NCBI GenBank assembly: GCA_013115145.1
Contig: JAAPAO010000014.1
Coordinates: forward strand, 62,001-126,000
DNA length: 64,000 nucleotides
From: Perkinsus chesapeaki ATCC PRA-425
Taxonomy: Eukaryota; Protista; Perkinsozoa
Reading direction: 5' to 3'
A program made the translations under genes and the position numbers. Every line of letters starts with the position of its first letter. Within the stretch, counting starts at the first letter, position 1. A model generated the notes under the pieces. That model ran no database searches, was not told where the DNA came from, and saw only the letters and a program-made list of their open reading frames with translations. This document shows, piece after piece, positions 3,863-28,492 of the stretch.

Positions 3863-6800
3863 ATGAGTGTCCCTAATTCGTCATCCATCACAGCGTCTCG
3901 TCCAGTGAAGTCATATCATACTTTCTCCTTATTAGCGAGCCCAGACATCGACCTACCTTACGGTCCAGGAAAGATATCAAACTCGGTAGGCCTAGCCCCT
4001 CTTCGTGGGGGTATTCTCCTCGGTAGGTTGGGGCCATTGCTGAACATATCCTAACTCATCAGAGGCTCACCGAAGTAAGGGGCTCCCTATCAACAGTGAA
4101 AGGGACTCGTCTTGTTGCAGATTGAAAGCGTTCTGGTACATTTGATAAGGCGGTCTGATGAGATGCAGAGGCGCATGGTGGATCTTGGTCACCGATTGGT
4201 AGAGCTCTAGAGCTCAGTAGTAGTGTTGATGGTGCTGTCAGCCTAATATGGTCGCTAAGGAGGAGCTACAGCTGGCAAATGAGGTCACTAGGAAGGCTTT
4301 CAAGGGACAAGTTGACGGGTAAGATCACAAAGCCATCTTGATCCGCTTATCCTTGATAAAACTTTAGCGATCTTTACACCCATATCGCTGCGTGGAAAAG
4401 CCTTTTTGCATTCATTCGTGGGAGAATCTACCAAACTTTTGTGAAATCAACTTGGTAGCTCTTTCGCCGCACTAACTGCACAAAAATAGCAGTCTTGGAG
4501 TAATTCTATTGAGCAGGCTCCGGGAGGACATCTCAGCTGCAAAGGTCTCCCTATCACAACAGGGGCACATCCACCGACTCTCACCGAAGCACAACTTGCC
4601 GACCACCGAAAGTAAGCAGGCAGGCTGCTGCTGCTTCACTGCGCTTGAAGCGCCGGGTTGGCAGGATACGCCACAGCTAAGGATTTCGAACTACTTGATC
4701 AAAGGGTAAGGGAACTAACACACGAAGTGAATCTAGACAATAAAGCATTTAAAGAAGGGTGAGATGCCATCATGGCTTGTAGGATCCGTAAGCGGGATGC
4801 ATTCAGGCTGAGCACCTGTAGAAGTGACATTAACAAGAGCACGGTGACAGTGGAGATGTTAGCAGATGAGAGCACTGCGATGAAGACGAGGGTGAAGGCT
4901 ATTCAGGTTGGGGAAGCTGGGTGGTTATTGGTGAAGGAACGGGGCAGGTTGAATTGGCCACGCATGGCTCAAGCAGTGGCGATGGCATCTCTCCTGTGGA
5001 GATGGGTTTGGTATCCGAAGATGAAGTTGATGGGAAGCTGGCTGATATGAGGTATAGGCTTTAGTTCATTTGGGGAGATGAAAGTGCTTGTCAGGGATTC
5101 TATTCTGGCGACTGTGGGCCGAGATTTAACAGCTAGGATGGAGGACAACAGGCAAGGGTTGAGGGAAGAGATAGAGAACTCTATGAGAGATAAGCTGCAG
5201 CAGGTGGAACTAAGTGAGCAGCATCATAGTCTTACGGTCATCGACGAATCCTGTTCATAGGTTTCTCCGAGCTCCGGACAGAGGTGATACCGTTACCGTC
5301 GGGGGAATAGCTCTTAGTGTTAGGCTGATGCTCGTTTTACCAATATCGACCAGAATGTATCTCAAATCAGCAGTAGCCTGGGAACGCCCGAAGAGGTAGG
5401 CGGTGGCTCCTCGTTGGTGAGGTGGTAGTAGGGGAAGATGGCAGGTGAAGGCCTTGCGGAAGTTAGCATCACGATCGGCCCTCGGGGTCGAGGACGACTT
5501 GAGCACCAAGAAGGTGACGTGTTCGGCACTGGGAGCATAATGGTGATTATTAGGTGCGTGAAATTGAGGAGCAGCTTGAGCGGAGCGGCGCAGCTCAGAA
5601 GGAGATGGGTAGGGGGTCCAGACGTAGCTGTTAAACCGGTCATGTGGTCAGACGCCACAGTGGGGCTGCTAAGTGAGGGATACGATGTTATTAAAAGGAA
5701 TGTTGCACAGCTTAAGAAGACCATCGGCAGGGCTCACGAGCACCTGAGGTAGTGATGGAGAGGGAGACGGCGGCAGTGTCGAATAGGTCACATGATGATG
5801 AGATAGAAGATCTCAAAGGTGCTGTCGTACTACTCCTTCGTGAACCAGTAGAGCCAACAGAGCCTGTCAAGATGGACGGTCGGTCTTTGGGGGTATATCT
5901 TGAATAGACTGTTTTTGGCAGAGACATCGCCACCCAGCCTGCAGCGGCAGGAAGTGGAACGAAGATGTGTCAATTCATGTGGGTTAGCAATGCTCCCGGC
6001 TGCTATGGCAAATGAGAGTGCCGCTCATGGATTGGGAAATGTGAGGCATAGTAAGCAACTTGGTTCACATGGGTGCTGGTTAGATGCCTATTGGTGACGT
6101 CCCAATGGATCGGGTGGCCGCCCTCACAATGAGTAAGCGCTATGGCAGGCTTTTTCCTATTCTTTCGCCCAGGGACGACAACTGCCTCGGTTGGAAGGCA
6201 GCTGTTCAACGACAGGCGGTACAAGAAGCGTCGTGGGAATGGTGGTAAGACGGTGGCAGGATGGCGTTGAAGAGAACTGTGAGCTTCAGATGCAAGTCGA
6301 ACTTGGCAGCCTGTTCCGCCAGCTACAAGCAGATTTCATGGGCATCCGGGAGGCCGTACTCTAGCGGGTCCTTGGCGTCCGGTTCGGAGGCTCAACCTCG
6401 ACTGCTACAGCACGATCCGAAGGGCTCGACGGGGGGTACTACGGCCCTCTTGCATGGATACATAATGTTCCTCGTTGTAAATGCTATAGTGTTGTGCTGT
6501 GTGGAGGGGACTTCACTCCCTGAGTGGACGAATCTCTGTAGAAAGTTCAGACACTCAAACTCGGCACCCGAAAGTGCATTCACGAGGTATTGAGCAATGG
6601 TGTTTTTCGCGCCTCCCACGGTTACCCGGAATGAGCCAGGAACTAATATAGCAACAACTATGCTGGCTATCATAGCTCAGAGCCCCAGAGTGGGTGGTGG
6701 AGGCTTGGGGAAGTCAGGGGCATCAGGAAGCAATGTGCAAGGTGAGCAGAAGGAAAGCGCGACAATTTCTGCGCGGAAAAATACTGGAACCGAGAATCGA

Positions 6801-7257
6801 ACTCGGGACCTACTGCGTGTTAGGCAGTCGTCATAACCAACTAGACCATTCCAGCTATACCTAATCGCTTTAATAATAGGGGTTTAGGAGGTATACATCC
6901 CTCGCAGGTTCCCTTCTTCGCAATCTGGCCCAGGGGCAATGCACAATACTACCAGCGCTCGAGGATCTCGCTGGTTTATTCTCCGACGATGAGGACGAGT
7001 TGTATACTAAGCCTCCGAACACGTCACGAACGAATACCCCTCCAGCTAGGGTGAGGCAAGGCGAACTATACACCTCAGGACCTACTCAGGCCACCACGGT
7101 GGATCCGTCGACGAACATTGTTGATTATTACGGGAAATCATACTGGAGGGAGAAGAGCCTATTAATGGATGCTGAACTCGATAACACAATCGAGCAACTC
7201 GACAACTTTCTGCTGTCACTTTATGGCAGAGTAGATGAAGTGCAAAGTGGTAACTGA
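3863..7257 (+). CDS. Hypothetical multi-exon protein with coiled-coil segments (may be two genes)
   Basis: Short plus-strand exons bounded by GT-AG, e.g. MVAKEELQLANEVTRKAFKGQVD, MEDNRQGLREEIENSMRDKLQQVEL, and a terminal LLMDAELDNTIEQLDNFLLSLYGRVDEVQSGN. No family recognised. Confidence 0.4.
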
Positions 7258-10526: not shown

Positions 10527-10764
10527 GGTGAAAAGTGATAACGTTTGAGAAACTAGTCTGTAAATGATGGTTAGCCTTTTTACACAATGTACTAGCTTCA
10601 AGTAGACAGGATGGCACAATAACAAAGTATTTGATGGCATGATAGGGAGGAGGGAATACGAAGAGAATGGTCATGTGCGGAGGTTAAAGGAAACATGGCG
10701 ACTGGACAGGTTTGCGTTCATTACTCCACAAAATGGTAAGGGGTAAGGAAAGTGATCCGAAAAA

Positions 10765-10861
10765 TGTCAGGTGTGGGGTTCGAACCTGAGAGCCTCAGTC
10801 TGAGGCCCTCAGAGGCTCGCACTGGACTGTTGAAAAAGTCTTGCGCTCCCCTACTCCTTAC
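10765..10861 (-). pseudogene. Decayed tRNA-Leu-like relic with intact B-box/3' end and T5 terminator
   Basis: Minus strand ends GGTTCGAACCCCACACCTGACA-TTTTT, a typical tRNA-Leu 3' end. The upstream part (GTAAGGAG...GCGCAAGACT...CAA) only loosely resembles tRNA-Leu; the T-stem 5' side and the acceptor stem do not pair properly. It contains a CCTCAG-A-CTGAGG hairpin. Confidence 0.55.
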
Positions 10862-13030: not shown

Positions 13031-14982
13031 TCACGGCGTAGCAACTAGACTGATCTCCTCCTCGATTTGAACCATTCGCTGCTCATACTCCTGTGATGAT
13101 AATATCCTGACAAAGTGAAATCCAGCGAAGAGGTACTGAGCCTCGACTGACTCCTCCGCGTCAAGATGTGGAATGTCTTTAAATGTCGGCATTATCAAGG
13201 GCCAATTGCTCGAAATTGCTTTCTCGACCCAAGGGCGGACCATTTCTGCGGGGTCCTTCCCCACCGACCGCCTCTGAGAGAAAAGTTGTCGAGCTACTCG
13301 CTCGGTGCTTACCAAAAAAGGAGTGTCAGTGAGTATGCGTCGGAGGGTAGCTCGAAATATCTTCCTCCAATGCGTTAAAGTTTCTTCATCATGTGCTGTG
13401 CACCGGAAAGAAGCGACAACAGCCCATCGGTGGGGCGCCAAAGCCCGCTTCCTGGCCTCCTCATACGGGCGGCCTGCAGTACAGCAGGTTAAAAGGGGGC
13501 TGGCTTTCATTGGCAGCTGTACCCTGTCCAAGGAACATGAGTGCATCATCATTCGCCCTCATCGGGAGTGTTAGCTGACACGCGTGACGTAGCTGTCGCC
13601 ACCTCTTTGTTCGTCTTTGCCTCATCTTTTGTAGCAGCTCTTGGACGAAGCTGGCCTCGAAGCTGGTCTTGAGACCTTCATAGTTGTAAAGGACCCTTCC
13701 AAAGGCTCCTCTATCTGGTTCGAATGATATACTGAGTTTCTTGATCACCCTTCGTCGTTCAGCGCCAAACGCAAGTTGAGAACGGCTAGTAGCTCTCCGG
13801 TACCACCATTGGAGTTGTCTCACGCAGAGCAGATAGCGCATCATACGCTGGGTGATGAAAGATAGCCTAGCGGACTCGACCAAGAAGGCTGCAACTATGC
13901 CCGACGCACGTGCTTGCATGCGGTGACGAATTCGCGATAAGTACCGCTTCAAGTATATTGCCAGACATAACTTGCTTGTTGGTGAAATGCGCTTCAAGGC
14001 AAAATAGATTCGCCAACGTCTGACGTATCGTTGCGTTCTGACTACTGCCAAGACGCAGAGCCATCGAGTTCTGCACCACATGACCCGCCTGACGAGAAGT
14101 CCAAGGGACGTGACGGCCGATAAGACAGCAAACCAGTGACCCTGGCGCTCTAGCAGTTCCTCGGCCGCGGCCTCAGCTTGAAGCTTGGCACTCTTAAGCC
14201 TGATGCGCTCTTCGCGGCCAAGGCGACTTCGTTCCCGGACCTCTGCCGCGGAAAGCACGGGGACGGTGCTCGGCGTGGTGTTGTGGGAGGGGCTTCCCTT
14301 GCTCAACCTGAGCCTCGGTGAGGCCGACCGGCTCAGACGGCCATCGGGTCCAGTCCACCTGCACACTGCAAGATCTTCAGAGGAATACAACGCGCTACCT
14401 TGGAGTGACAGGAAAAGTGATCCCCTTGCCAAAGTGACGTTCGCGTCCAATGTTTACGAACTCCATAAGGGGTTCAGGAAGTGGTATGCCTTACAAAGGC
14501 TCTCGGTTGCAAGGGTTCCAGCGGTTACCTCGTGGCGATTGATCTCGATTGAAACGAATACCGCGACCTTCGGCTGACATGGGCCTCTTCGCCGCTGCAG
14601 GCTCGCGCGTGAGCTCCTCAATGACATCATTGCCGCTCGCAACATCCCTCTTACCTGTAGAGACATACAGTATATCGACTACTCGGTTTTTGTTGCAGGC
14701 ATGACTCTCTCGTATACTCCTGGTCATAAAAGCGCTCTTCGGCCTGCGCTGCACTAAATGGTACACTGGAGAGTACGTTGCTGGGCTAGGCTTCACTGAT
14801 GGTCTTCGTAACCTCTCGTCACGCCCGGTCTGCCGTCCGAAGCTGAGCGATATCGTCCGCTTTGTAGTAGCCGACAAGAGAGCTGGAGTTCTCTCTCGCC
14901 ACCGTGATCGGAGGCCCTGTCGCTGTGATCGTGTGGTAGAGTTATCACCATGCGCTGGCCAGGTGGGTGCCGTCTTGGCCAT
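13031..14982 (-). CDS. Hypothetical protein with basic, IQ-like helical region (may be the 3' part of the RCC1 gene)
   Basis: Long minus ORFs (329 and 173 aa) with IQ-like segments LAVVRTQRYVRRWR and CVRQLQWWYRR, plus a coiled segment ERSRLGREERIRLKSAKLQAEAAAEELL. Confidence 0.45.
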
Positions 14983-15239
14983 CTAACAATCCCTCTCGTA
15001 CGGCACCGTATCATTCGCAGTACCGGGTTTTCGGAGTTGGCAATGGTTGGCCAAGAACCAACACCTGCTGTAGTTGCTGGTCTTGGGAATGCCCGCCTTG
15101 TGGTATCGGGGACCGCCCGGGACGAGGTCTTGTGTGGTCGGCTCCGCCGCTGCCCACGTTCGTTCGGCGGACCAACGGTCCGGCTGCCCCACTGAATTAT
15201 AATATACCCCACTTCACAGCGAAGTGGATTCACCTTCTC

Positions 15240-17036
15240 TTCACTGAATATTGTCCCCCGATGAGCACCAGGATGCTCGTATGCTAGAACAACTGTAAGG
15301 CTATCTCCTGCATACACTTTCAGTGCCCGATACTCTCGGGCATCCAAGTCCGGTACCTTCCAATAAATGAATGCTTTTGAAGGTATGTCGTGCTACTGGT
15401 ATTGGTTTGTTTATATCTTCTCTACTGCTAGTTCCCAGGATCCCAGCGACTGCATCGTTAGAGCCACATGCGAGGACTTCTCCATCGTCGGTTACGAACG
15501 TCTGTCGTCGAAAATGTCAGCGCAAACGGAGCTCGTTTATCGATTACCGAAAACGCTCGCCCACACGCTACGTCGATTACGGTCGACGAGTCGGGTAAAG
15601 CAACTTCCATGGGGCTATGCTTGTGATTGTTGTCTGTAAAGTAATCGCTCTGACGACCCAAGGCGTACCGTGAGAAGTGCTCACGAAAGCACATGGCCAT
15701 CGCTCAAATCCGAGCTGATTGTCCTTACTCGTCTCTTCCTCGCCTCGACCGAGAAATGAAAGACTTCGCGTTTGAGAGTATGCTGCAGCGGCCCATGACA
15801 GTACTCTAAGGGTAATCCTCACATCAGCACGCGTGCGCACAGCGGAATAGTTACTTAACCCGGGAGCTATCACATTCTACCGCACACAAGGAGAAGTATT
15901 CCCCTTGCTTATACTGTGTAATGCAAACACCGTCCTCCCCCAGGACATCCAGCTCGCGTGCCTGTCGAATTGGCAGTGCTAATTACAATTATTTCTTCTC
16001 TTTGTACAAGCTACTTCGTGTCCGTCGCCCCATTCGTAGAGGTTATCCCCGGGAGTGAAGACGCAGCCGCTCCTGTTCCCTGCAGCTGATATGAATGTTA
16101 TTTTTCGGGCACTACCGAGGGGAACGATCTGATGTAATCAGCGCGATACATGGTTGCGTCCTGGAGCTTTTACTCGAGTAACTTGGTTATGCCCTTTAAC
16201 GTCAGCGGCCGTAGGGCTTAGTTGTCCTTGCTGGTTCGAGCCGCATGAGAATAGCTCGCCAGTATTGGTTAGGAAGAGAGCGTGTTCAAGGCCAAATGCC
16301 ACACACCGCACTTGACGGGACATCCACGCTAGCCATGGCTTAGGCCTCGGGAGGAGCCCACCGAGGTTCAACACCATCATGCTTCTAATGGGCCACGAGG
16401 GTTACGCTGCATAGCAGGGCATTATGCTTACTCGTGTTTGCTGGAGTGACTGGATAATGGTGTGGACAAGGCCCACACTCCGTCGGGCCCCGAGATTATC
16501 CTTGGTTGTGGGGGAGCCTCCTGAAGTACCCGTTCGAGCAGTCTAAGAGACTGCGTTATTTACACTTGTCTCGTCGTCATCTTCCGGTGGGCATATCAAT
16601 GACTCTATATCAACTCTAGATTGTCCAGCTTCATTAAGTAGTGCGTCTAGATCGTTATATGCCGCGTCACCATCGCTAACGAGTAGCTAACACCAGTGTA
16701 TCATCTCGGGGTAGCTGAGTCACGGTCCAACCTCGGTCCAGTGGATCTCTACAGGCTGACCCTCTGCGAATTGGTGTTCTATCGGGTACCATTCGAACAG
16801 TCTAAAGTGCTTTGCTCGGATTGTCTTTGTCTGTTTTCCCCTACCTCTCATCCATGGTCACAATGGTGACCTTATCTCCAGTTACCGATGCGTCTGCAAC
16901 ACCATCGACAGGGACCCGACAACGAAGCGATCTAAAGCGGCAAATTGAGGGAATATGAGCAAACGGGTAGCTACTTTTGGTCCTGAGAAGGCCTGTGGGC
17001 GAAGCAGTAGGCCGATAACCTTGTATCAACTGTCAT
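15240..17036 (-). CDS. RCC1/BLIP-II repeat protein
   Basis: RCC1-type blades VRCVAFGLEHALFLTNTGELFSCGSNQQGQL, LGRQ...PMEVALPDSSTVIDVACGRAFS and KVPDLDAREYRALKVYAGDSLTVVLA. Probable ATG at 17036 (MTVDTRLSAY). Confidence 0.75.
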
Positions 17037-17108
17037 TGACGCATACACAACGCTTAGGCACGAATAGCTGGGAGAGCAGAGGCGCAGGTTCGAACCCCGG
17101 GAGCGGCA
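17037..17108 (+). pseudogene. Decayed tRNA-like relic (His-like 3' end) with intact B-box and T5 terminator
   Basis: GGTTCGAACCCCGGGAGCGGCA (17087-17108) is followed by TTTTT. Upstream TAGCTGGGAGAGC resembles a D-arm/A-box remnant, but the acceptor 5' strand (expected GCCGCTC) and the matching T-stem are absent. Confidence 0.5.
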
Positions 17109-17113
17109 TTTTT

Positions 17114-19642
17114 ATGTCAACAACGCGATATTGCAAAATTGTGATCGCATCCGATCCTTGCGTATCAAACCGCAGTTCATTCCCTACAATGCAACCATCC
17201 CGTCGCATATATGCCAATGGACTAACTCGTCAAGTTCGCCGGCACAATGATCTCCAGAGTCGTCTCATTACCGCCGATAAAGAAGGTAAATAGCTATTCC
17301 CAAGGATGGTGGTCCAATGATTCTCAGAATTCGAAGAGGCTTGTCAAGAGCTCCTTTCATCGACCAACGCCTGCCCATCAGAGCTGCTGTGTGCTGCCGG
17401 CCGGGCCGTGGCCTCGACCAAGCTCACAGTGTCCCCGAGGACCAAGGAGGCTTTGTGTACCGCAGCTGGACGATTATTGGAGATCAGTACTAATTTAACA
17501 GCAAGTGATGTAGTAGGGACACTCGCATCACTGGCATCTGCCGGACGGGCCTCCGGGGTGGCTGCACGCCATCTGATTGATGGTCTCAAGGGACATCTAC
17601 CCTCCATGGTCCCGAATATGAGCCCTCAAGAGCAACTCAAGGCCATTGCCGCCTTACAGAAGCTCAAGGAGCCCTTCAGCCCCACAGTCCAGCTGTTGCT
17701 CGACAACCTAGCCTCCAAAGCCGGGTTAGATACTCTCAGTGACTTTGCCTTGGCCTCTCTGTCCAGGACGGTTGCTACTTCGGGCTGGAAGGCAACTGGG
17801 TTCCCTGAATCGCTGGCGGCCTCGTGGAAGCGTCGAGTCCTGACCCATCGTGAGGTCAAAGCAAACGTGCACACCGCAGTGATATTCGCCCTTGGCAAAA
17901 TAGCGGATAAGGGTGTCGTTAGGGATGCGCTGAGAACCTCCAACAGCTCTCTCGACTTTACCAATTTCACCTTCACGGAGCTGTCGCAGATCTTATGGGT
18001 TTATGCCAATAATGGCGACGTACACCCCGCAGAGTGCCTTTGGAAATGCCTTCTTTCAACGGTCTCAGTGGACGGTATGATTGCCTGTGGTAGGCAGACC
18101 ATCGGTTATGCCTTCTGGGCCGCTGGAGTGATGTCCCAGAAGTACCAGGGGGCCGAGAGCATCTTGCCACTGCATCTCATCGAGGTCATGGCTGACAGCG
18201 TCGTACTAGGTAGCGTCAACGGTTTCCAGCCCTCCAGTGTGAGCTATATGGTTTGGGCAGCGGCCCTAGCCGGTGAGGAAGAGCGGGTCAAAAGCTTCTG
18301 TTGTCATATCCTTGGGGATAACTCGACACCCGAGGCCGTCGGAAGGTTCAAATCTCTAGAGCTAGCGAACGTCTTCTCGACTATTCGCGCTTTGGGCCTG
18401 GAAAGTGCCGTCCCAGACTTCGCAGCATCTGCCCGACAGTACTTCCTGGAAGCTGCTGAAACTGCTGCTGGTACCGCGGCCAATGGAAGGGCATTCACCC
18501 AAGTAACATGGGCCATGGTACCTGACGGTGGCCCGGAGATAGAGGCATTTATGAAGTGGTTTGTGGCCAACTCGGCGGGAGTCAGCGTGAGGTCTCTGGT
18601 CAGGATGCTATGGGCTGTCTCGAAATGTGATGGGCTGGCGGAGACCACAGCGGGTCGGTCGGCCATGGTTGTTTCCTTGGTCCAAGCCGCTGGGGAGAGG
18701 TTTATGGGCGAGAAGGGAGACAGACTGGTGCAGCAGGATGTTGGTTTGATGGCATGGTCGTTGGGTACTTTAAGATTGTCCCATTATGACTTGGAAGATA
18801 AATGTTGTTTATTTGGTATAGATATGTTATTTAATAATATAATAGATAGTCGACATTTATCAATGTTACTTTGGGGTATAACATCTAATTCACATACATC
18901 ACCAAAGGCACTACAACTTATCAAACATGTTGTATCAGCCGTTAACGCCGGCAGCATCACCTTCGACCCTGTCGACGTGGCGATGGTCCTCTGGGCTATG
19001 GCCGCCCTGGACGTCTATGATGAGTCTGCCTTCCGAACCCTCCTGTCGGTGTTGTCTGCCGGCATTGACCAGCTTCCCTCGACTGAGAGACGGTCTAGCC
19101 TGAGCAAAGCCCACCGGGCCTATCTATGGGCTGCCTCATCGCATGGATTTGTATTTTCCTCCGAAGAGGTCGTTGGCATCGCTGAGGCTTTGGAAGAGTC
19201 CCAGCGATCTAGCGGTGCAGTCTGTGCCAACGGTGCCTTCCAAACGGAGGTCTGCCAGGCCCTAGCGAGAGTGCTTCGGCGATCAGTGCTACCTGACGCC
19301 GAGATTTTATCTGAGGTCGACCTTGCTCCTGCCCTACCTGGTTTGGTGGTTGATGCTGCCATAGTCGATCCTAAGACAGGCTCGAGGGTCCTTCTCATCG
19401 AGGTGGATGGTCCCCATCACTACGTAGACGTCCTAGGCTCCACAGGGATAACAGCTCGGCAGTATAACGGTCAGAGCCGGCTAAAGCAGGACCTTATTCG
19501 CCGTGCAGGGCATAAACTCCTTTGCGTTGAAGATGCCAAGTGGCGCATCCTGAAGGATCCAGCCGCCCGGCACGAGTACCTGTCCCATGAGGTGGCCATG
19601 GCCCTCGGTTTGGGCTCAACTAAACAATTGTGTCCGACATGA
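17114..19642 (+). CDS. Helical-repeat (OPR/HPR-like) RAP-domain protein 1
   Basis: Short first exon (ATG 17114 or 17189, R-rich MQPSRRIYANGLTRQVRRH), 42-nt intron 17286-17327, then one ~2.3-kb exon. Repeats such as FTELSQILWVYA and FQPSSVSYMVWAAA; C-terminal RAP motif VVDAAIV...LLIEVDGPHHY...GQSRLKQDLIRRAG...W. Confidence 0.88.
18731..18929 (+). repeat. 199-bp AT-rich in-frame segment, copy A (shared with 21431-21629)
   Basis: Direct comparison shows 4 mismatches in 199 bp against the copy 2700 bp downstream. GC is 31/120 (26%) over 18781-18900 versus 58% and 63% in flanking 60-mers. Confidence 0.95.
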
Positions 19643-19704
19643 GTTTCCGATTCTCCTTTGCCTTCTGTTGCCTGCTCGTCAATAAGGCTCTCTGCTTCAG
19701 CTTC

Positions 19705-22315
19705 ATGTATGTCACCCGGCAGCTCAGATCGGCGCTATCGACTAAGGATGCTGGCCGCCAAGTGAAGGAGCTGCGCAAGCTTCTGGACTCCCGGGATCGA
19801 GGTCAGTTACCAGCTCTTGTGCCTAGTCTTGCTGCTTTAATAAATCGGGCTCATCTACCTCCCCGATGGAGGGAGGCTCCAGATTCCATTAGCTCCTTGG
19901 TATCTTCGAAAGTTTGCGGGTCGTCCAGCTAGGCGCTGTTGTGGGAATAACTGAGGATGGCTTAGATATTCCAACACTCCCCTCTTAGGAACCTCCACAG
20001 CGGCCTGTAAGAGGGTAGCCGACATTCTCACCAACGCCTCCGATTCTCCCATTCGTCTGGAGTTCACACTATTGGCCGCTGCCCTCGGCAAATGCTCGCA
20101 GATGCCAAGCGGTCCCCAGCAGCAGCATCGGATGCTTACGGCTATCAGCGAGGCTATGATCCAGCGCCTGGAGGAAGACAAGTCCCATGGTCTCTCCCCC
20201 AAGAGGCTCGCTGAGACCCTCAGAGTAATCGCCGTCATTGGCAGGTCAGCTCCCGAGGCTGTGGTCAAGCTTCGCGGCATGTTGCGGCCCCAGCTGCTGC
20301 CTGCTATCCCAGACATGGCCGCACTCCAACTCCGACACGTTGCGTGGGCCATTAACAGACTGTCGTTGCCGTGGCGCGATGAGGTCCGCTTAGCCGTCTC
20401 CACCCTACTAGACCGCATTGGCGTATCATCTGTCGGCTCCGAGGAGCTGGCCACCTTTGTCTGGGCTGCGAGTCGGATGGGGTGCTGCACCCCTCAGTTG
20501 GCTGCCACAGTAGCCCTTGATTGGACCGGTCGAATTAATAGCCCAGGTGTCACCCCAGAGGCCCATGCCATGGTCCTGTCCTCGCTGGGGGCTACGGCCA
20601 AGACCCGAGACGATGTCCTGCTGCTTTTCGACACTTGCTCGGCCCAACTAGACTTATCCTCCCTCAACACAAGCAGCCTAGCGTCCCTCCTATGGGCCTT
20701 CGGTCATGTCACCAATGCCCCTCTAAACGCTCGTGTCTGGAAGACCTGCTTGGCTACCTTCACTGAGGCCACCGTACGAGATTGTCCGCTATCCAGCCTC
20801 GGCAATGCCTGCTGGGCAGCCGGCACCATTTTCCAATGCACAAGCTCGGATCTGCCGCTGGTCTTCATCCGTCACATCTGCGGTCTGATCGCATCCAGCG
20901 ATCTGGGGCCGTTCCCCTCCTCGGCTATCTCGAGCATCGTTTGGGCTGCAAGCCTCGCTAATGACGGCGGCCCTTGGGTCGAGGGTGTCTTCCGTCACCT
21001 CTTGGGCAACGGTACCTTCCCACTAGAAAAGGTGCATCTCTCATCACAGTGGAAGCCCCTCGAGCTGGCCACGGTCCTCGCCTCTATAGCCGACGCCAGC
21101 CTCGATCAAGCACTCTCAGGCTTCATCGACTTGGCAAGAGCATCCGTAGTCGAGACCGTCAATTCCTGGCCGTCGACCTCCCAGAACGCTCTCGCAGTCT
21201 CGCAGCTTTCTAGGGCTCTGTGGTCCTCTGGTGAAGTGGCCATCCTTCCCATGGTCGAATGGGCCCTGGCCAATGGTCACGTGCTGACGCCTCAGAGCGA
21301 AAGCAGGATACTGTGGGCTGCTGCCAAGATGTTTGAAGCCTCTGCTCTCCGGGAGCAGCCGGCCTGCGTAGTGGCCTTCATCGAGAGACTGTACCAACGA
21401 TGCTGCGAGCGGCAGGCGCAGGAGTACTCCCAGCAAGATGTGGGTTTGATGGCATGGTCGTTGGGTACTTTAAGATTGGCCCATTATGACTTGGAAGATA
21501 AATGTTGTTTATTTGGTATAAATATGTTATTTAATAATATAATAGATAGTCGACATTTATCAATGTTACTTTGGGGTATAACATCTAATTCACATACATC
21601 ACCAAAGGCACTACAACTTATCAAACATGCTGTCCATCGAATCGAAGATGGTACCTTCCGACCGCTGCCCGCTGATGTCAGCCTTATTATTTGGTCACTC
21701 GCCGTCGCCGACCACTACAGCGACAGGGCCCTCCGACAGCTGCTGTGGGCTCTGTTCACCGATGGCGCGGTCATTAGCCCCGCAGCCCCACACACTGAGC
21801 GAGGGGCCTCTCTCATTAGACTTCATCGAGCCCTCTTGTGGGCCAGGGTCTGCCATGGCTTCGTACCAAATAACGAAGAGGAGGCCAAGCTTATGGCCAT
21901 AGCCAAGGCCCAGAGGGTTCCTGGTGGTGGGATACTCAACAGCAGCACTTTGCAGCTGGAGATACGAACCCAGCTGCAGAACATCATCTCGACTGAGACG
22001 CCGACCGCTAGTCTTCGGGATGAGTACGAGCTGCCATGTCCCTTGGAAGGCATCTTCGTCGACCTCGCCGTGATCGCTCCAGATGGCCGAGTGGAGCTTG
22101 TCGTGGAGGTCGACGGCTACTCGCATTTCTCGCAGGTGATCGGTTCGGGAACGCTGCCATCTCTGCAGTACAACGGTGCCACCGAGCTCAGCCGGCGGAT
22201 ACTGCGAAAGGCAGGGTACAGGGTCCTCAGCATCAACACTGTTGACTGGAATAACACACAACGACATGAGAGAGGGCAGTTCTTGACAAGACTCTTCCGA
22301 GAGGCAATGTCATAG
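19705..22315 (+). CDS. Helical-repeat (OPR/HPR-like) RAP-domain protein 2
   Basis: First exon from ATG 19705 (or 19639, overlapping the RAP1 stop), probable intron 19920-19965, then one long exon. Repeats LNTSSLASLLWAFG, CPLSSLGNACWAAG; RAP motif FVDLAVI...VVEVDGYSHF...GATELSRRILRKAG...DW. Confidence 0.88.
21431..21629 (+). repeat. 199-bp AT-rich in-frame segment, copy B
   Basis: 98% identical to 18731-18929; encodes QQDVGLMAWSLGTLRLAHYDLEDKCCLFGINMLFNNIIDSRHLSMLLWGITSNSHTSPKALQLIKH. Confidence 0.95.
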
Positions 22316-22394
22316 TGTTTCCGCAACCTTCAAGTTTCGCAGCTCTCTAGCTCTGAGTTGTCCTACTACCTCGCCAGGTTGGCAGTTCCACTTG

Positions 22395-24872
22395 ATGGCT
22401 TCGACCACCACAGCTGCCCTCTGGCAGCATGCACGGACATGTACCACGACAGTGGCGACTGGGCATGGGTTTGCTGCCATCTCGGACCCGTTCAAACTGC
22501 GCAAGATACTGCTGGATGCTAGCAGGCAGAAGAGGAAAAGCGGTACGTCTCCACGGCCTGGGCATCTCATTGGTTCCCTTTCAGATATATTAGCAGTCTG
22601 CCGTCGGGCTCTGGTTCTCAGTGCCACAAGTGCGAATTCACCCTCCGTGAAGTTGCAATTGTTGACCACCTCACTTCACCGATTGGTCAAGCATTTTTAT
22701 AACTCTCATGCGGAGCTTGTTGATTCCCATTGCGAGGAACTCTCGAAATCGCTGGAGCCCTCGGAGATTGCCATCAACGACATCGCTGATGTGCTGTGGT
22801 CCATCGGTATGGCCGGCGCGGCCTCTCCGTCACGCGCCGCCCTCTTGAGCATGATGAAGCCCTCGGTACTCGGCCTCCTCGCTGGGGCCTCTCCAAGTCA
22901 GCTCAGCAACGTAGTTTGTGCCATTGCTAAACTTGACCTCGACTGGTCTGAGGAAATTACCGAATCTATGGCACAGTGTCGTGACCGACTTGGTATTGAA
23001 ACCACAGCTGCTGGAGTCATCTCTAACATTTGCTGGGCAGCTGCTCGTACTGGCTGTCGTGATGATGCCTTCCTCAATGACGTGGCGGCGACTTGGCTCT
23101 CCCGCGACGCGAAATCTGTCCCGCCATCGGCGACAGCAATGGTCTTCTGGTCCCTCGGTAAGCTCGCGCCCGAAGCTTCCTACGTAGCCGACCTCTTTTC
23201 TAGAGCTCGCTCCCATGAGGGCCTGTTTTCCGGTTTCGGTCTTCGGGAATGCACATCAGCCCTCTGTGGGTATGCTTACTCCGGGAAGGTTATCCCCAGT
23301 GTTGAGCTCTTCAAGTTGGCGTTCGGGTCACTTGAAGCGGCGAGCCAGGGGCATGTCTCCACTCAGACCATCGCCAACTGTTGCTGGGCATCGGCGACGC
23401 TAGTGAAGCACCACGGGGATCAGATGATGGCACCTGCCAGCTGTCTCACCCGAGCATTAACGGAAACCATCTCTAACGCGCGAATAAGGTCCTTTAATCC
23501 ACAGGAAGCATCCAATGTCTTGTGGGCCTCAGCGCAGCTGCTCGATGCCAATCATGTGGCTTCAGTGGCAAGTGCCCTATTGCCAGCCAACCAGCAGCAC
23601 CTCGCAAGCTACACCCCCCAGGACATAGCTGTGTGTCTAGCTGCATTGACCCAGGCTGGAGTTAGAGGGGCATTCGAGACCTTCTTCGTGTTGCCAGCGA
23701 TGCAGAAGGTTCATCAGACTATTCACACTTGGCCCTCGGACAGCACTCACGTTCATGCCGTGGGGCAGCTGGCTTGGTCCATGGCCGGGCGGCAATTCCA
23801 AGCGATATCTCCACTCCTACAGTGGGCCTCGTCGAAGGCTATAAGCTCAGAAACTTTTGTGAAGCTCCTCTGGGCCACCGCTTCGACCCCAGAGGCCCAG
23901 AGGGGCTCCTTGGTTACCCCTCCAGAGCTCCTGGACCTTCTCGACAAGAGGCCTGAAGGCACCCTCAACCAACAAGAGCTGGCATTGACTCTGTGGTCCC
24001 TTGCAACCCTACGACTGTCACACCAACAGCTAGAAGAGCAGTGCGCTATTGAAGCCAGAGAAATCCTTAGCAGTAGCGGCTCATCCTCAATCACCAGTGG
24101 GCACTTGTCAATGGTCATGTGGGGACTGGCCTCCAATTCACATCGCTCTGCAGCAGCAAAAGAACTCATCCAGGAGATTGTCGAGCAAGTCGGTTCAAGG
24201 CGGTACCGGTTTACAGCGGCCGACTCGCACCATGTCGCTTGGTCCCTAGCAGCGTCTGGCGTTTTCGACCCCGCAATCCTGGAATTGCTTCTGTCCGCGG
24301 CGGCCACGGTTGATATTGACAACACTGCCCTCCAAAAGGTGAACCAGCTCGCACTGTGGGCTTCATCACACGGTTTTCGGCCTTCCCCAATGGTGGCTCA
24401 TCTCTTAGCACGAGCATCTGTGGCAGCTAACATGGAGGCAACGGTTGCCGACAGTATATTCCAAAAGCAGATCGCTGCATGTCTGAATGCGGCTGTCGGC
24501 AGCATCAACACCTACAGAGTTTCCCCGGAACTCGATCTCACTTCTTTCGGTTGCCCCGGAGTCATAGTCGACCTGGCAGTTCTACGTCCCAGTGGCGCTC
24601 CTCAAGGCGAAGTGGCATTGATAGTTGAAGCCGATGGTCCTTCGCATTACATTAACGTGGTGGCTGACAAGGCCGTCCAAGGGCAAGTTCTAGATGGCAA
24701 AACCATGATGAGACGAGCCGCTCTGAAACGGCTCGGCTTTGCCGTACAGGATATTAATATATCTCAGTGGAAGAGTCTGAGTCGGAGCGATAGGCAAGAG
24801 CTTGTCGATTGCATGGTCAAAGAGCAGTTGGATTACGGAGGAAAGCCTCCTGAATTAAGTGGCTGTTTCTGA
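22395..24872 (+). CDS. Helical-repeat (OPR/HPR-like) RAP-domain protein 3
   Basis: Single ~825-aa ORF. Repeats ASPSQLSNVVCAIAKL, FNPQEASNVLWASAQL, YTPQDIAVCLAAL; RAP motif IVDLAVL...IVEADGPSHY...DGKTMMRRAALKRLG...QW. Confidence 0.88.
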   Translation: MASTTTAALWQHARTCTTTVATGHGFAAISDPFKLRKILLDASRQKRKSGTSPRPGHLIGSLSDILAVCRRALVLSATSANSPSVKLQLLTTSLHRLVKHFYNSHAELVDSHCEELSKSLEPSEIAINDIADVLWSIGMAGAASPSRAALLSMMKPSVLGLLAGASPSQLSNVVCAIAKLDLDWSEEITESMAQCRDRLGIETTAAGVISNICWAAARTGCRDDAFLNDVAATWLSRDAKSVPPSATAMVFWSLGKLAPEASYVADLFSRARSHEGLFSGFGLRECTSALCGYAYSGKVIPSVELFKLAFGSLEAASQGHVSTQTIANCCWASATLVKHHGDQMMAPASCLTRALTETISNARIRSFNPQEASNVLWASAQLLDANHVASVASALLPANQQHLASYTPQDIAVCLAALTQAGVRGAFETFFVLPAMQKVHQTIHTWPSDSTHVHAVGQLAWSMAGRQFQAISPLLQWASSKAISSETFVKLLWATASTPEAQRGSLVTPPELLDLLDKRPEGTLNQQELALTLWSLATLRLSHQQLEEQCAIEAREILSSSGSSSITSGHLSMVMWGLASNSHRSAAAKELIQEIVEQVGSRRYRFTAADSHHVAWSLAASGVFDPAILELLLSAAATVDIDNTALQKVNQLALWASSHGFRPSPMVAHLLARASVAANMEATVADSIFQKQIAACLNAAVGSINTYRVSPELDLTSFGCPGVIVDLAVLRPSGAPQGEVALIVEADGPSHYINVVADKAVQGQVLDGKTMMRRAALKRLGFAVQDINISQWKSLSRSDRQELVDCMVKEQLDYGGKPPELSGCF

Positions 24873-24932
24873 GCTTCTTGTTTCACACAGTGACTGTATC
24901 TTTTCGTGTTTACCACTGCGGCGTATTATAAC

Positions 24933-27468
24933 ATGGTTTCTGCTAGTATCACGTCACTTCGGGCTTCGATGTATCGTCCTCTCGTGGCATCGTTGTCCAG
25001 CAAACCTGTGACGGTTTTGGCCTCGGCACCTTCGAGGTTGCTGTCAACGACTGCAGTGGCAGGTAAAGCCTCTAATCATATGGCTGTTGTGCCCCTGCAT
25101 TCCAGGTTCCCGACGTTCCCCCATGAGCTTCGTCGAGGGCTACGAGTACACCGTACAGAAAGAGCTTGTGAAGGCGCTGAAGCGAGGCACCGATGAGAGC
25201 CTCACCTCCGCTCGTGGCTTTTGCATGACCTTAACTGACGTCCTCACATTAAGGCCCGCCAATATGAAGCTTGCCAGAGAGCTGCTTCTCCTGCTCTCGG
25301 AATCGAAGCACTTTGTCGAAGGCCATCGAGATGTCGTGGATCTACTCGCTGACACCTTGAGGCCCCGGCTTACCGAGGAGACCATTTCCCGTGTTCAAGG
25401 CCGGGCACTGGGCCAAATGGCCGCATCTATCGGCAAGCTCAACCTTCCTTGGTCCGAGGAGGTTACTCTGATAGCTCGACACTGCACGGAGCGCATAGGT
25501 CTTGAAATGATGTCAGCTACAGCTGTAGTCAGTCTCGCCAGCGGCATGTCGAAGTGCGACGGTAAACTGGAAGGCTTTGCAGAAGCGTTGGCCCTTGATT
25601 GGAGCAGGCGGCTGAATGGTGACGATGGATCCTTAAAGCCGGCTCTACATGTTCTCTTCTTCCGAAGTCTTGCCCACTTATCGGCCGGTCAGCCCAGTAC
25701 TGTTGCTCTGATGCACGAGTTCAATCGGGTAGCAGATATCAGTGCATTCACACCACACCAGAAGGCTCAGCTCTTTGGGGCGCAGAAGCAGATCCTTGGC
25801 GACGGAAATGCCCGGAGCGGTGAGGTCGATCACGAGGACCCTGCCAAGCTATCGCTGCCCGAATTAATGAAGTTGTTCGCCACGTGTGCACGGCGGAAGG
25901 AGATTCCCCGAAAAACGATCGTCGTTGGCCTAGTCGAGATCCTCCAGAATCCCGGGCCACCGATCGAGCCTCATCTATTGGCAAACCTGTGTCGAAGTGT
26001 TGGGAGTCTCCTCAGTAACAGAACCACCAACTCCAAGGACCTTCATCAGCTTCTTGAGCTCCTCAATTCCACACTGGTCCACTCCCCCAGCCCCCTCCAA
26101 CTCACCGATCTTGGTAGCATCCTGTGGGCGAGCTTGTCTTCCCCTTCCCCGAAAGTGAAGCGTCTGGCCTCGGTGCTCCTAAGCAAGGTGGATGCTGATT
26201 CATTAGCCCTTGCACAGCCGCAAGTCCAAGCACCCGTCCTGTCGGGCATTGTAGGACTCGGTCTCGCCCAGGACTTTGCTGATCTTGTCGGACGCATTGC
26301 CGAGCTGCGTGGCATGAGTTCTTGGTCGTCCGACGATGTGAGGGGGGTCAGCCAGCTTGTCGGGCCGCTGTCGCGGATTCCTGGCATGCGGCCGCAGGTC
26401 TTGGCCATGGCTGCGTGGCTAGGGAACAAGCCCGAGTGTTTGACAGGCTACGTTGCCGGAAGGGCATTGAGGGCTATCGCCAACTGCAATTCTGCTCGGC
26501 AAATCCTGACTGAGTTCCCTGAAGCTGCCCACAGGTTCTGCGATATTCTCGGCAGTCACTGGGATCAGCTCGATGCATCACCAAACCTGATACTCGCCGA
26601 CGTGGCATCGATAATGTGGGCTCTGGCAACACTTCGGTTGTCCGACTACGACCTGCAGGAGAAGTGCTGTCAGTCAGCTGTTAGGCTCCTCCGACAAGCT
26701 AGTAAAACTCAACTCCTTCAAGCACCAGTACTTCTGTGGGCACTGGCTTCCAACGCTCATCGGACGCAAGGCTCCCGAGCGCTCCTTCTGGAAGTGACGC
26801 AGACCAACGCAGCTTCACAACTACCTGTTCGTGAGCTGCCGGTGATTGCATGGGCTGCGGCTGTTTTCAACGTCTACAATGAGGCCTTCCTCCGAGATAT
26901 TCTCGAGCGCTGTTCTTCTGGCACCCTGGACTCTGCCGCCCTTTTCCGACTTCACCGAGTGCTACAGTGGGCCACAGTCCAGCGTGATTTCCAGCTTCAC
27001 GGTCTGAAGGATCTGGCGGCGAGGGCTGCCTCAGAGGCAATGAGTAGTGCAATACCGTCCAGCAGCTCCTTTCAAGACGAGCTCATCAAAGAGCTTGAGC
27101 CTCTCGTTACGGAGGTGTGGCCACAGTGGGAAGTGGTCTCTGAGTACAACTTATCTCCTCACGCTGCTGGGGTAGTCTGCGACATTGCCTTGCTCGATAA
27201 AGTGTCCCGAAGTCCTCTAGTGCTGCTAGAAGCCGACGGCGCGCCGCACTTCGTCCACTGTGTTTCATCTGATGGTACACGCCGCCTTGCCTATGATGGT
27301 AAGACTGAGCTCCTGCGCAGGATCCTCACGGCGCTGGGCTACAACATTGTGTCGATAGACACTAATTCATGGAAGTCTACTGCACGGTCAAAACGGCAGA
27401 ACATGCTAAAGGAGCGCATCTATGCGGCGCTAAAGGGCAAGGTGTTTCAGGATTCCGTTTCAGCATAA
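24933..27468 (+). CDS. Helical-repeat (OPR/HPR-like) RAP-domain protein 4
   Basis: Exon 1 (24933-25062) encodes an acid-free S/R/A/L-rich presequence MVSASITSLRASMYRPLVASLSSKPVTVLASAPSRLLSTTAVA, followed by a 43-nt intron 25063-25105 and one long exon. RAP motif VCDIALL...LLEADGAPHF...DGKTELLRRILTALG...SW. Confidence 0.88.
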
Positions 27469-27586
27469 TTTCTGATAGTGTTTTGTTGTCATTATAGTGG
27501 CGAGTTCTGCGCGAACAGAGCTACAGCTGGGTATATTAAACTACCTTCTATTGGGGGTCTCACGCTACCATCAGTTTTGGAATTCG

Positions 27587-28492
27587 ATGGGCTCTGCAAC
27601 TGACGATGATCTGATAGAATTCGATACCATGGTGTCGGCATACTCGCTGCCGCTCGTTTATCAGCAACGCTTCCGGCGTATCGAGGAGCGGCTCCATCGA
27701 CTAACTGATGCCTTAAGAGAACAGCGGCGATCTACGCCGAGCTGCAGTCCAAGCGGGAGCCCACAGCGCATGGCAAGGAACAGAAGTGTGGTGAACCTCT
27801 CCCCTAATGACGCTCCTCGGACGCAGCCCAAGTCAATTTACCACAGAAGCTGCGTTCCGCCACCTCCTCTACATTCCCCTAAGACTAATGTATCATCCTA
27901 CAGTGGGAAGTATCGGTCCCCTACTCCGTCGAGGAAGCTACCGGAGTGTCATGTCGATTTGTCCCCTTATCTACGTCAAGCAGCAGCGACACCGGAGAAA
28001 AAGAGCCTTGTGGATGCCCCACATGAGCATCGCGTGTCGGTTGAAAGTGAGAGAATATTGGCCGACTTGCACGCTATGGACGAACGAATTGCCACTATCG
28101 AGCGTGAAGTGAAGGGCTCTTTGAAACGGCAAACGCCACCGTCGTCACTTGCGGAGACGCATAACACTCAAGCTGCTGCGTCGCAGGTTGAGAGGAAAGT
28201 GCCGGTGAACTATTCTGGAGCTCCGGCAAGCTTGCCTCCCAGCCGACTCCCACCAGGACGGATACAACTTAGCAGCAGTGTCAGCACGTGCGGTGAGATG
28301 CGACGGTCACCACGCCTGGCAGAGTCGAGACCACCAAGTTGGAGGGATTTGGCGGCCACTTCAGCCAAGCATTCCACACCGTCGGCCACATCAAGCCATA
28401 GCCCGTCCGAGCCGGTCCTCTTAGCGCCTCAGCTTGACAACTCCCAACGTCGTCCAGGGCGTATCGGTAAAATCGGCAAGAGTGTTCAATAG
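27587..28492 (+). CDS. Hypothetical Ser/Pro-rich, probably disordered protein with short coiled coils
   Basis: Uninterrupted ~300-aa ORF from MGSATDDD; SP-rich; helical segments RFRRIEERLHRLTDALREQRR and LHAMDERIATIEREVK. Confidence 0.55.
   Translation: MGSATDDDLIEFDTMVSAYSLPLVYQQRFRRIEERLHRLTDALREQRRSTPSCSPSGSPQRMARNRSVVNLSPNDAPRTQPKSIYHRSCVPPPPLHSPKTNVSSYSGKYRSPTPSRKLPECHVDLSPYLRQAAATPEKKSLVDAPHEHRVSVESERILADLHAMDERIATIEREVKGSLKRQTPPSSLAETHNTQAAASQVERKVPVNYSGAPASLPPSRLPPGRIQLSSSVSTCGEMRRSPRLAESRPPSWRDLAATSAKHSTPSATSSHSPSEPVLLAPQLDNSQRRPGRIGKIGKSVQ

Follow-up and report, generated by a model that had tools for sequence, protein, structure and literature searches.

In most of the eukaryotes studied, gene conversion favors G/C, and to our knowledge its effects on base composition have almost always been reported as GC-biased. 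Repeat-induced point mutation (RIP) of fungi works through C-to-T transitions, damages reading frames and causes the copies to diverge. Two groups of RAP-domain proteins serve below as comparisons for the genes we describe, those of the FASTK family and those of the heptatricopeptide-repeat (HPR) type. For non-allelic conversion in humans, a mean tract of 250 bp has been estimated (bioRxiv 10.1101/135152). The locus examined here carries an island of 193 to 199 nt in tandem copies 2.7 kb apart, which is within the range of known conversion events.

The window, the whole 64-kb stretch of Perkinsus chesapeaki DNA analyzed, contains a tandem array of four genes with hardly any introns, all on the forward strand, that encode RAP-domain proteins with helical repeats. 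P. chesapeaki is a clam parasite. Pc1 (FOL47_001634, 17408-19642) has a long exon with an ORF of 744 aa, and its annotated product, P0003, reaches 803 aa through an N-terminal extension beyond that ORF. Pc2 (FOL47_001635, 19706-22315) has a first exon at 19706-19803, a GT..AG intron at 19804-19989 and a long exon ending at 22315. The remaining paralogs are Pc3 (22392-24872), which is orthologous to P. marinus Pm3 and P. olseni Po3, and Pc4 (FOL47_001637, 25087-27468). The RAP domain (PF08373) scores 26 to 36 bits in all four genes, above the Pfam cut-off of 24.2 bits, and occupies ORF residues 678-738 of Pc2; a FAST_1 match at Pc2 residues 508-559 scores 16.6 bits, below its cut-off of 27.4 bits. 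A profile search returned matches to RESC6 and mitoribosomal RAP proteins, and the four proteins resemble FASTK-type and mitoribosomal RAP proteins. They probably bind mitochondrial RNA. The annotated products have an arginine-rich N-terminus, and the main text of the paper on the mitochondrial complexome of P. marinus makes no mention of the genes.

An earlier note, made from the sequence alone, had drawn attention to a segment that Pc1 and Pc2 share almost letter for letter, and its description of that segment stands. Copy 1, at 18731-18929 in Pc1, encodes QQDVGLMAWSLGTLRLS...LQLIKH, and copy 2, at 21431-21629 in Pc2, encodes ORF residues 454-519. Each copy is read in the frame of its host ORF. 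They differ at 4 of 199 bases (18736, 18742, 18779 and 18821, so that every mismatch lies at or to the left of 18821), with two amino-acid changes, Ser/Ala and Asp/Asn, and two synonymous differences. Similarity drops at both edges, as had been claimed: over 45 nt to the left and to the right, the paralogs are 20 to 40% identical. A repeat search of the 64 kb found a single family, pairing 18731-18933 with 21431-21633 (203 nt, 98% identity, spacing 2700), and no second family of this kind. Pc3 and Pc4 carry the homologous block that had been quoted for them, unconverted and with normal GC content.

To place the block within the protein, we used an AlphaFold2 model of Pc2 (pLDDT 89, pTM 0.80), in which the block itself reaches a pLDDT of 94 to 97. 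It is predicted to form three helices (454-467, 472-487, 493-505) and the beginning of a fourth (511-526), or about 3.5 helices and roughly 1.75 hairpins. The block had been placed just ahead of the last repeat and the RAP domain, which does not hold, as about six further helices (533-642) separate it from the predicted RAP beta-fold at residues 647-722. A structural alignment pairs model residues 395-747 with FAST1-FAST2-RAP of human FASTKD4 (9gek) at Z 22.2, with an rmsd of 3.5 for 286 residues, although the 9gek chain is an MBP fusion and the N-terminal end of this alignment is uncertain. Residues 320-747 align with 9i05_Xr, a mitoribosomal RAP protein of Toxoplasma, at Z 24.5. The block lies at the N-terminal edge of a FAST_1-like region and runs into it, as part of a conserved C-terminal module and outside the variable N-terminal repeat tract.

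We also considered whether the block could be an artefact of assembly or polishing, a spliced-out intron or a mobile insert, a reading whose sole support is the odd base composition described below. Logan contigs came from run X1 (2020) and from runs X2 and X5 (2022, a different study and sample). Contigs spanning 17400-18772, 18900-21472 and 21600-22400 cover all four junctions, so independent runs connect each of the unique flanks to the block. The core collapses into one 187-nt contig (21443-21629) with a depth of 162 against 88 to 93 for the flanks in X1, and of 122 against 62 to 70 in X2. A core at about twice the depth of its flanks, joined to four flanks, indicates two copies, with neither an artefact nor a third identical donor. 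Variant paths in X1 and X5 are mixed, and as Logan contigs pop variant bubbles these paths are uninformative. Among the runs listed as containing these genes there was no RNA run. The architecture recurs in the independently assembled genomes of two other species, and the block keeps the invariant residues of the family, is modeled with the pLDDT given above and is included in the annotated products. Homology of the block to the same residues in all 11 genes compared also speaks against an intron or mobile insert, and the probability of an artefact or insert of any sort is negligible.

At the syntenic positions in P. marinus and P. olseni, paralogs 1 and 2 likewise have this block in common. 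Within a species the two copies are 98.0% identical at the nucleotide level in P. chesapeaki and 97.5% in P. marinus; in P. olseni they agree at 93.9% of a fixed 198 nt, and at about 96% (7 mismatches) within the 193-nt island. Between species, the block of P. chesapeaki is 65 to 67% identical to that of P. marinus or P. olseni, and the latter two are 83 to 85% identical. In all three species the left end of the island falls on one and the same Gln-Gln codon pair, and the right ends agree to about 6 nt, with lengths of 199, 196 and 193 nt. Flanking protein sequence resolves the clades Pc1+Pm1+Po1, Pc2+Pm2+Po2 and Pc3+Pm3+Po3, each with 100% support, whereas a tree of the block joins Pc1 with Pc2 (100/98) and Pm1 with Pm2, next to which Po1 and Po2 stay unresolved. 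On the block, the orthologous clades are rejected by AU tests (p 1.6e-6 and 1.3e-5). No other such tract was found among all paralog pairs across the three species. Pooled over the three species, the mismatches showed no significant excess near the edges of the island (P 0.15), and two P. olseni assemblies, identical at this locus, contained no polymorphic tract. The trees, AU tests and identities support exchange between paralogs as the source of the Pc1/Pc2 identity, as had been proposed, and from these sequence comparisons we conclude that the ~195-bp island represents long-lived concerted evolution via interlocus gene conversion in three species.

Sharp boundaries conserved in three species could also be expected if, without any conversion, the block were kept identical by an element that functions as DNA or RNA, for instance a target of small RNAs, an antisense transcript or an RNA with a defined structure. 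However, nucleotide conservation between P. chesapeaki and the other two species is only 65%, yet 94 to 98% within species, and high identity within species combined with low identity between them indicates homogenization as opposed to constraint. Synonymous differences separate the copies in all three species, folding energies are ordinary (z -1.4 and +1.1), and Rfam gave no match on either strand at E values up to 1. We therefore assign a functional element a very small probability and retain conversion as the explanation for the identity.

The base composition of the block had been put at about 26% GC, which is true of its core only; the whole block has 32 to 33% GC, and its lowest 150-bp stretch has 27.3%. 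Even so, no other 150-bp stretch of the 64 kb is as poor in GC as the two blocks, leaving aside a run of N (mean 0.50, sd 0.059). GC at third codon positions (GC3), in steps of 11 codons, is 0.64, 0.36, 0.09, 0.00, 0.18 and 0.18, compared with 0.64 to 0.91 just outside. The A/T-rich core spans 18764-18929 in copy 1, where GC3 is 0.36 before dropping to 0.00-0.18, and 21464-21629 in copy 2; flanking GC3 in P. chesapeaki is about 0.6 to 0.7. The profile is graded on the left and abrupt on the right, part of which could result from tighter constraint on the amino acids toward the left. Block GC3 is 0.24 to 0.25 in P. chesapeaki, 0.53 to 0.56 in P. marinus and 0.59 to 0.61 in P. olseni, in the latter two equal to or slightly below their own flanks, and 0.51 to 0.63 in the homologous blocks of paralogs 3 and 4. 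Among the three species compared, the A/T shift is limited to P. chesapeaki.

One source for such a segment would be a third, A/T-rich donor that gave the block to one paralog, from which it was then copied into the other; a diverged pseudogene, some different locus or a foreign genome, such as that of an A/T-rich relative, could have played this part. A third donor was suggested in the earlier note, and it is consistent with a codon usage unlike the rest of the cluster, dominated by TTA, ATA, AAT, CAT and GGT, and with the position of the block as a composition outlier within the 64 kb. Against it stand the two-copy depth of the core in runs of two studies and the failure to find a third protein with the block in sets of 5.8 and 1.84 billion proteins, while metagenome contigs yielded only distant relatives, at 22 to 45% identity over the best aligned segments. 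Further, the amino-acid identity of the block to P. marinus and P. olseni (64 to 65%) matches that of the flanks (56 to 63%), as expected under vertical descent, an island of normal GC content is already present in both of those species, and A/T-richness is graded along the block as opposed to uniform up to its edges. A third donor is not supported by these data, and we consider it distinctly improbable.

[quoted passage not shown] We scored substitution polarity at sites where P. marinus and P. olseni agree but P. chesapeaki differs. In paralog 2 the ratio of GC-to-AT to AT-to-GC changes was 35:6 in the block and 147:142 in the flanks (Fisher p 2e-5), and in paralog 1 it was 34:5 and 181:136 (p 2e-4); the unconverted block of paralog 3 gave 13:5. 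First and second codon positions are also shifted (14:2 and 6:1), and 24 of 66 block residues are replaced by A/T-coded ones. The right half of the block (positions 91-198), which is the A/T-richest, has no mismatches between Pc1 and Pc2, and all four fall in the less A/T-rich left half. Two known processes were rejected as explanations. RIP does not fit, because 21 of the 46 GC-to-AT changes are transversions (25 are transitions), the ORF is undamaged, the conserved residues are in place and 98% identity persists between the copies; GC-biased conversion would enrich G/C, and block GC3 is 0.24 in P. chesapeaki next to flanks at ~0.6 to 0.7.

It is conceivable that conversion homogenizes the block but that local selection causes the A/T shift, through rare A/T-ending codons that slow translation or through low mRNA structure. 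Slowed translation would serve folding or import. That the shift affects one lineage only, though all three convert, and that the block RNA of P. chesapeaki has no significant structure (z -1.4) would agree with such selection. However, the shift at first and second positions and the replaced residues look like mutation or repair pressure, not synonymous codon choice, and no independent sign points to selection, making this account unlikely. We favor a conversion-linked A/T bias, for which the evidence comes from this one locus and from substitution patterns. Since conversion usually favors G/C, and since P. marinus and P. olseni convert without an A/T shift, such a bias would have to be lineage-specific.

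The evidence points to the following course of events. Paralogs 1 and 2, now only about 25 to 30% identical as proteins, split before the genus diversified. The block comprises the most conserved helices of the family, where the paralogs have stayed similar enough to pair, and recurrent interlocus (non-allelic) conversion over the 2.7-kb spacing overwrites one copy with the other, so that the block evolves as one unit per species while its surroundings evolve gene by gene. The boundary is probably held by failure of heteroduplex in the ~40%-identical flanks together with purifying selection on the edge residues; the left boundary is sharper than a neutral eroding island predicts, so selection is needed as an added assumption. 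On the P. chesapeaki branch, the converting block may have fixed GC-to-AT changes preferentially, above all in the part that shows no difference between the copies today, with heteroduplex repair that favors A/T or GC-to-AT mutagenesis of single-stranded recombination intermediates as the likely cause. Such a drive would have lowered GC3 to 0-0.2 and moved roughly one residue in three toward amino acids with A/T-rich codons (Phe, Asn, Ile, Lys), leaving invariant positions untouched. Taken as a whole, a conversion-maintained block with a putative A/T drive in P. chesapeaki is the best explanation, and we give it a probability of about 0.8.

A broader proposal, possible but on balance doubtful, is that P. 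chesapeaki has non-allelic conversion that favors A/T, through repair bias or coupled GC-to-AT mutagenesis. If true, it arose once P. chesapeaki had separated from the lineage of P. marinus and P. olseni, mirrors the GC-biased conversion of most eukaryotes and drives every tract that paralogs keep exchanging to extreme A/T-richness; its trace would be sharply bounded A/T islands in GC-rich genes, with the RAP block as one instance. A lineage moving toward A/T, with two sister species as controls, would help to separate repair bias from recombination-associated mutagenesis.

The block had further been read as part of a possible segmental diversification system that would reprogram RNA specificity. 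This is not supported, as there are exactly two copies, exchange makes them alike, and homogenization of the same interval in three species points to conservation of a shared module, not diversification. Cassette exchange with several donor modules was likewise rejected, there being no other tract in the cluster and no other carrier in the protein sets. Instead, the locus is a clean natural example of conversion keeping a small functional module of two old paralogs in lock-step over the lifetime of a genus, with the remainder of both genes free to diverge. It marks ~65 residues as the part that two RAP proteins must keep alike, an obvious target for mutagenesis, and these residues probably contact a shared mitochondrial RNA or protein partner. 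In practice, trees built from the block misrepresent how the genes are related, and its copies merge into one in short-read graph assemblies.

The locus resembles described cases of interlocus conversion (review by Fawcett and Innan 2011, PMC3924837; measurements on human duplicates by Harpak et al., 10.1101/135152) in near-identity within species and divergence between them, a tract of a few hundred bases with orthologous flanks in close tandem copies, and homogenization that lasts only where similarity is kept. It differs in that a single ~195-bp tract lies inside genes otherwise ~40% identical in nucleotides, with a left edge identical in three species, and in being A/T-enriched in one species where converted tracts are usually GC-enriched. 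As in GC-biased gene conversion of X-chromosome palindromes (PMC8981503), a directional change in composition is confined to frequently converting sequence, but the direction, as read from the outcome, is reversed (35 GC-to-AT changes against 6 AT-to-GC). With RIP it shares only that duplicated DNA turns A/T-rich. The proteins share with FASTK-family and HPR RAP proteins (FASTKD4, 9gek; Toxoplasma, 9i05 and 9g6k; trypanosome RESC6, 8fn4) an N-terminal alpha-solenoid, a putative helical module behind it and a C-terminal RAP (PD-(D/E)XK-like) fold, a predicted likeness based on sequence-profile and structural matches at just 9 to 17% identity and with FAST_1 below the Pfam cut-off.

Four consecutive, co-oriented ORFs of 744 to 826 codons each lie on the forward strand: Pc1 (17408-19642, annotated FOL47_001634), Pc2 (20072-22315, annotated FOL47_001635), Pc3 (22392-24872) and Pc4 (25087-27468, annotated FOL47_001637). 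All four have a C-terminal RAP domain above the Pfam cut-off. Pc2 also has a 5′ exon (19706-19803) followed by a 186-nt GT..AG intron (19804-19989), with the remainder encoded in a single exon; the short exon codes for a basic, arginine-rich N-terminus that looks like a mitochondrial presequence. The AlphaFold2 model of Pc2 (pLDDT 89, pTM 0.80) consists of an alpha-solenoid and, starting at residue 647, a beta-fold. In structural comparison, model residues 395-747 match the FAST1-FAST2-RAP module of human FASTKD4 (Z 22.2), and a Toxoplasma mitoribosome RAP protein matches over residues 320-747 (Z 24.5); sequence profiles match trypanosome RESC6 as well as algal and apicomplexan mitoribosomal RAP proteins. 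Based on these structural alignments and profile matches, Pc1-Pc4 are presumably FASTK/HPR-type proteins, predicted to bind mitochondrial RNA. The locus is not described in the literature on both Perkinsus and the RAP domain. As to a role in the mitoribosome, PMAR007492 and PMAR007493 go unmentioned in the main text of the P. marinus complexome paper.

Several other features of the window were recorded. Directly 3′ of Pc4 is a 331-codon ORF (27497-28492, forward strand) with no Pfam match; a 291-residue gene occupies the equivalent place in P. olseni (14338-15213 of locus L005), and the ORF is probably a conserved neighbour. A 29-nt inverted match (10760-10788 and 17085-17113) carries a T-arm-like GGTTCGAACC motif, and one of its arms lies immediately 5′ of Pc1. 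A single intact tRNA-Val(AAC) sits at 6782-6855 on the reverse strand, and a 44-nt tandem repeat at 62150-62425 is broken by a run of 98 Ns, an assembly gap.

The earlier note described a near-identical coding block in two otherwise diverged paralogues, and this was confirmed. The copies in Pc1 (18731-18929) and Pc2 (21431-21629) are both in frame with their host ORFs and differ at four positions (18736, 18742, 18779 and 18821), of which two are synonymous, one exchanges Ser and Ala and one Asp and Asn; identity between Pc1 and Pc2 collapses to just 20-36% in the 45 nt flanking the block on each side. Neither the four paralogues nor the rest of the window holds a further such tract. Read-derived Logan contigs from two studies (2020 run X1; 2022 runs X2 and X5, from a separate study and sample) enter the block from all four unique flanks (17400-18772, 18900-21472 and 21600-22400), which confirms the junctions. 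The repeat core is merged into a single 187-nt contig, with a depth of 162 in X1 (flanks 88-93) and 122 in X2 (flanks 62-70). A third identical copy would be expected to give approximately three-fold depth; since the core is at about twice the flank depth in both runs, the block is present in exactly two copies and is not an artefact. An intron or mobile insert was excluded by the reading frame, homology, inclusion in the annotated products and the confidence of the Pc2 AlphaFold2 model over the block (pLDDT 94-97). A look for transcripts turned up no RNA run with these genes among those listed, and nothing came from run X6.

The P. marinus locus (L001) and P. olseni locus (L002) are syntenic and contain the same tandem paralogues, of which the first two are near-identical over the same interval in each species. 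[quoted passage not shown] Within species, nucleotide identity between the two copies is 98.0% (Pc1 and Pc2), 97.5% (Pm1 and Pm2) and 93.9% over 198 nt (Po1 and Po2, with seven mismatches in the 193-nt island). Between species, it is 65-67% for P. chesapeaki against either relative and 83-85% for P. marinus against P. olseni. Changes specific to one species, including synonymous ones, are common to both paralogues of that species. Outside the block, orthologues share 56-63% amino-acid identity across species and paralogues 23-31%. The flank tree recovers three orthologue clades, each with 100% support. The block tree pairs Pc1 with Pc2 (100/98) and Pm1 with Pm2, and constraining it to the orthologue clades is rejected in AU tests (p 1.6e-6 and 1.3e-5). 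No other paralogue pair has a comparable tract in the three species compared. We interpret the block as the concerted evolution of one small island through recurrent interlocus gene conversion, which on these comparisons predates the split of the three species and continues in each.

A polymorphic conversion tract was looked for in P. olseni, where the second assembly is identical at the locus: JABANN (L002) and JABAHT (L005) show no base difference over the blocks or in the 60 nt to either side of them. Gene models in P. olseni run paralogues 2-4 together, giving single fused products of 2488 and 2401 residues (L002 10527-18305; P0019). The underlying ORFs are separate (L002 10527-13004, 13437-15668 and 15885-18305) and the merged models are an annotation error, because of which length-filtered protein searches miss the P. 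olseni paralogues.

The block in P. chesapeaki is also strongly AT-rich, as the earlier note had observed, although at 32-33% GC overall it is above the ~26% given there; its lowest 150-bp window is 27%, and the two copies are the lowest-GC windows in the 64 kb, a run of N aside. The composition is graded, with GC3 (GC at third codon positions) in successive 11-codon bins of 0.64, 0.36, 0.09, 0.00, 0.18 and 0.18, against 0.61-0.68 in the remainder of Pc1 and Pc2. The proposal that a third, A/T-rich donor supplied the block found no support: this grading is not the uniform composition of such a donor, core read depth fits two copies, no further carrier was found among the proteins searched, a scan of metagenome contigs brought up distant RAP genes alone (22-45% identical over the best aligned segments), and amino-acid distances over the block look vertical. 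A diverged, unannotated donor may still exist, though this is unlikely.

Comparison across species places the compositional change in one lineage. In P. chesapeaki, GC3 of the block stands at 0.24-0.25, compared with 0.53-0.56 for P. marinus, 0.59-0.61 for P. olseni and 0.51-0.63 for the homologous blocks of paralogues 3 and 4. Among sites at which P. chesapeaki departs from a base shared by P. marinus and P. olseni, the paralogue 2 block has 35 GC-to-AT and 6 AT-to-GC changes, against 147 and 142 in its flanks (Fisher p 2e-5); for paralogue 1 the counts are 34 and 5 in the block against 181 and 136 in the flanks (Fisher p 2e-4). The unconverted paralogue 3 block has 13 and 5. Block GC-to-AT changes comprise 25 transitions and 21 transversions spread over all three codon positions, and 24 of the 66 residues are replaced, mainly by A/T-coded ones, with invariant positions intact. 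This pattern looks like mutation or repair pressure as opposed to codon choice; a process resembling repeat-induced point mutation is ruled out by the mix of transitions and transversions and the intact invariant positions. The A/T shift is a separate, real event that is specific to P. chesapeaki and opposite to the usual direction. Block positions 91-198 are both the most A/T-rich and perfectly identical between the copies, and all four mismatches fall in the less A/T-rich left 91 nt (hypergeometric p about 0.04, a test picked post hoc), which hints that the A/T drive may be tied to how intensely the copies convert. From this one locus, we tentatively favour A/T-favouring conversion or conversion-coupled mutagenesis behind the shift, although P. 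marinus and P. olseni convert the block with no shift at all. Should the A/T bias extend across the genome, it would count as a noteworthy form of biased gene conversion.

The suggestion that exchange forms a diversification system reprogramming RNA specificity is contradicted, as just two copies take part in the exchange and the outcome in all three species is similarity between them. Nor does the block lie in a variable repeat tract. It adjoins and partly enters a weak, below cut-off FAST_1 match (Pc2 residues 508-559), placing it in the conserved C-terminal module. A hidden RNA element was also rejected, with no Rfam match at E up to 1 across 17000-28000 and ordinary folding z-scores for the P. 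chesapeaki and P. marinus blocks.

No stretch of the family is better conserved than the island (identity to paralogue 3 is 47-48%, versus 22-31% elsewhere), and pairing plausibly persisted there for this reason. The exactness of the left edge in all three species suggests that selection on edge residues may also stop the island from eroding; mismatches are not significantly clustered at island edges when the three species are taken together (P 0.15). The mechanism behind the identity is ordinary, if unusually neat: the conversion island is as old as the genus and one of its edges is conserved. Homogenisation lasting solely where similarity persists is a known outcome (PMC3924837), and the length of the island agrees with known non-allelic gene conversion tracts, which have a mean of 250 bp in humans (bioRxiv 10.1101/135152).
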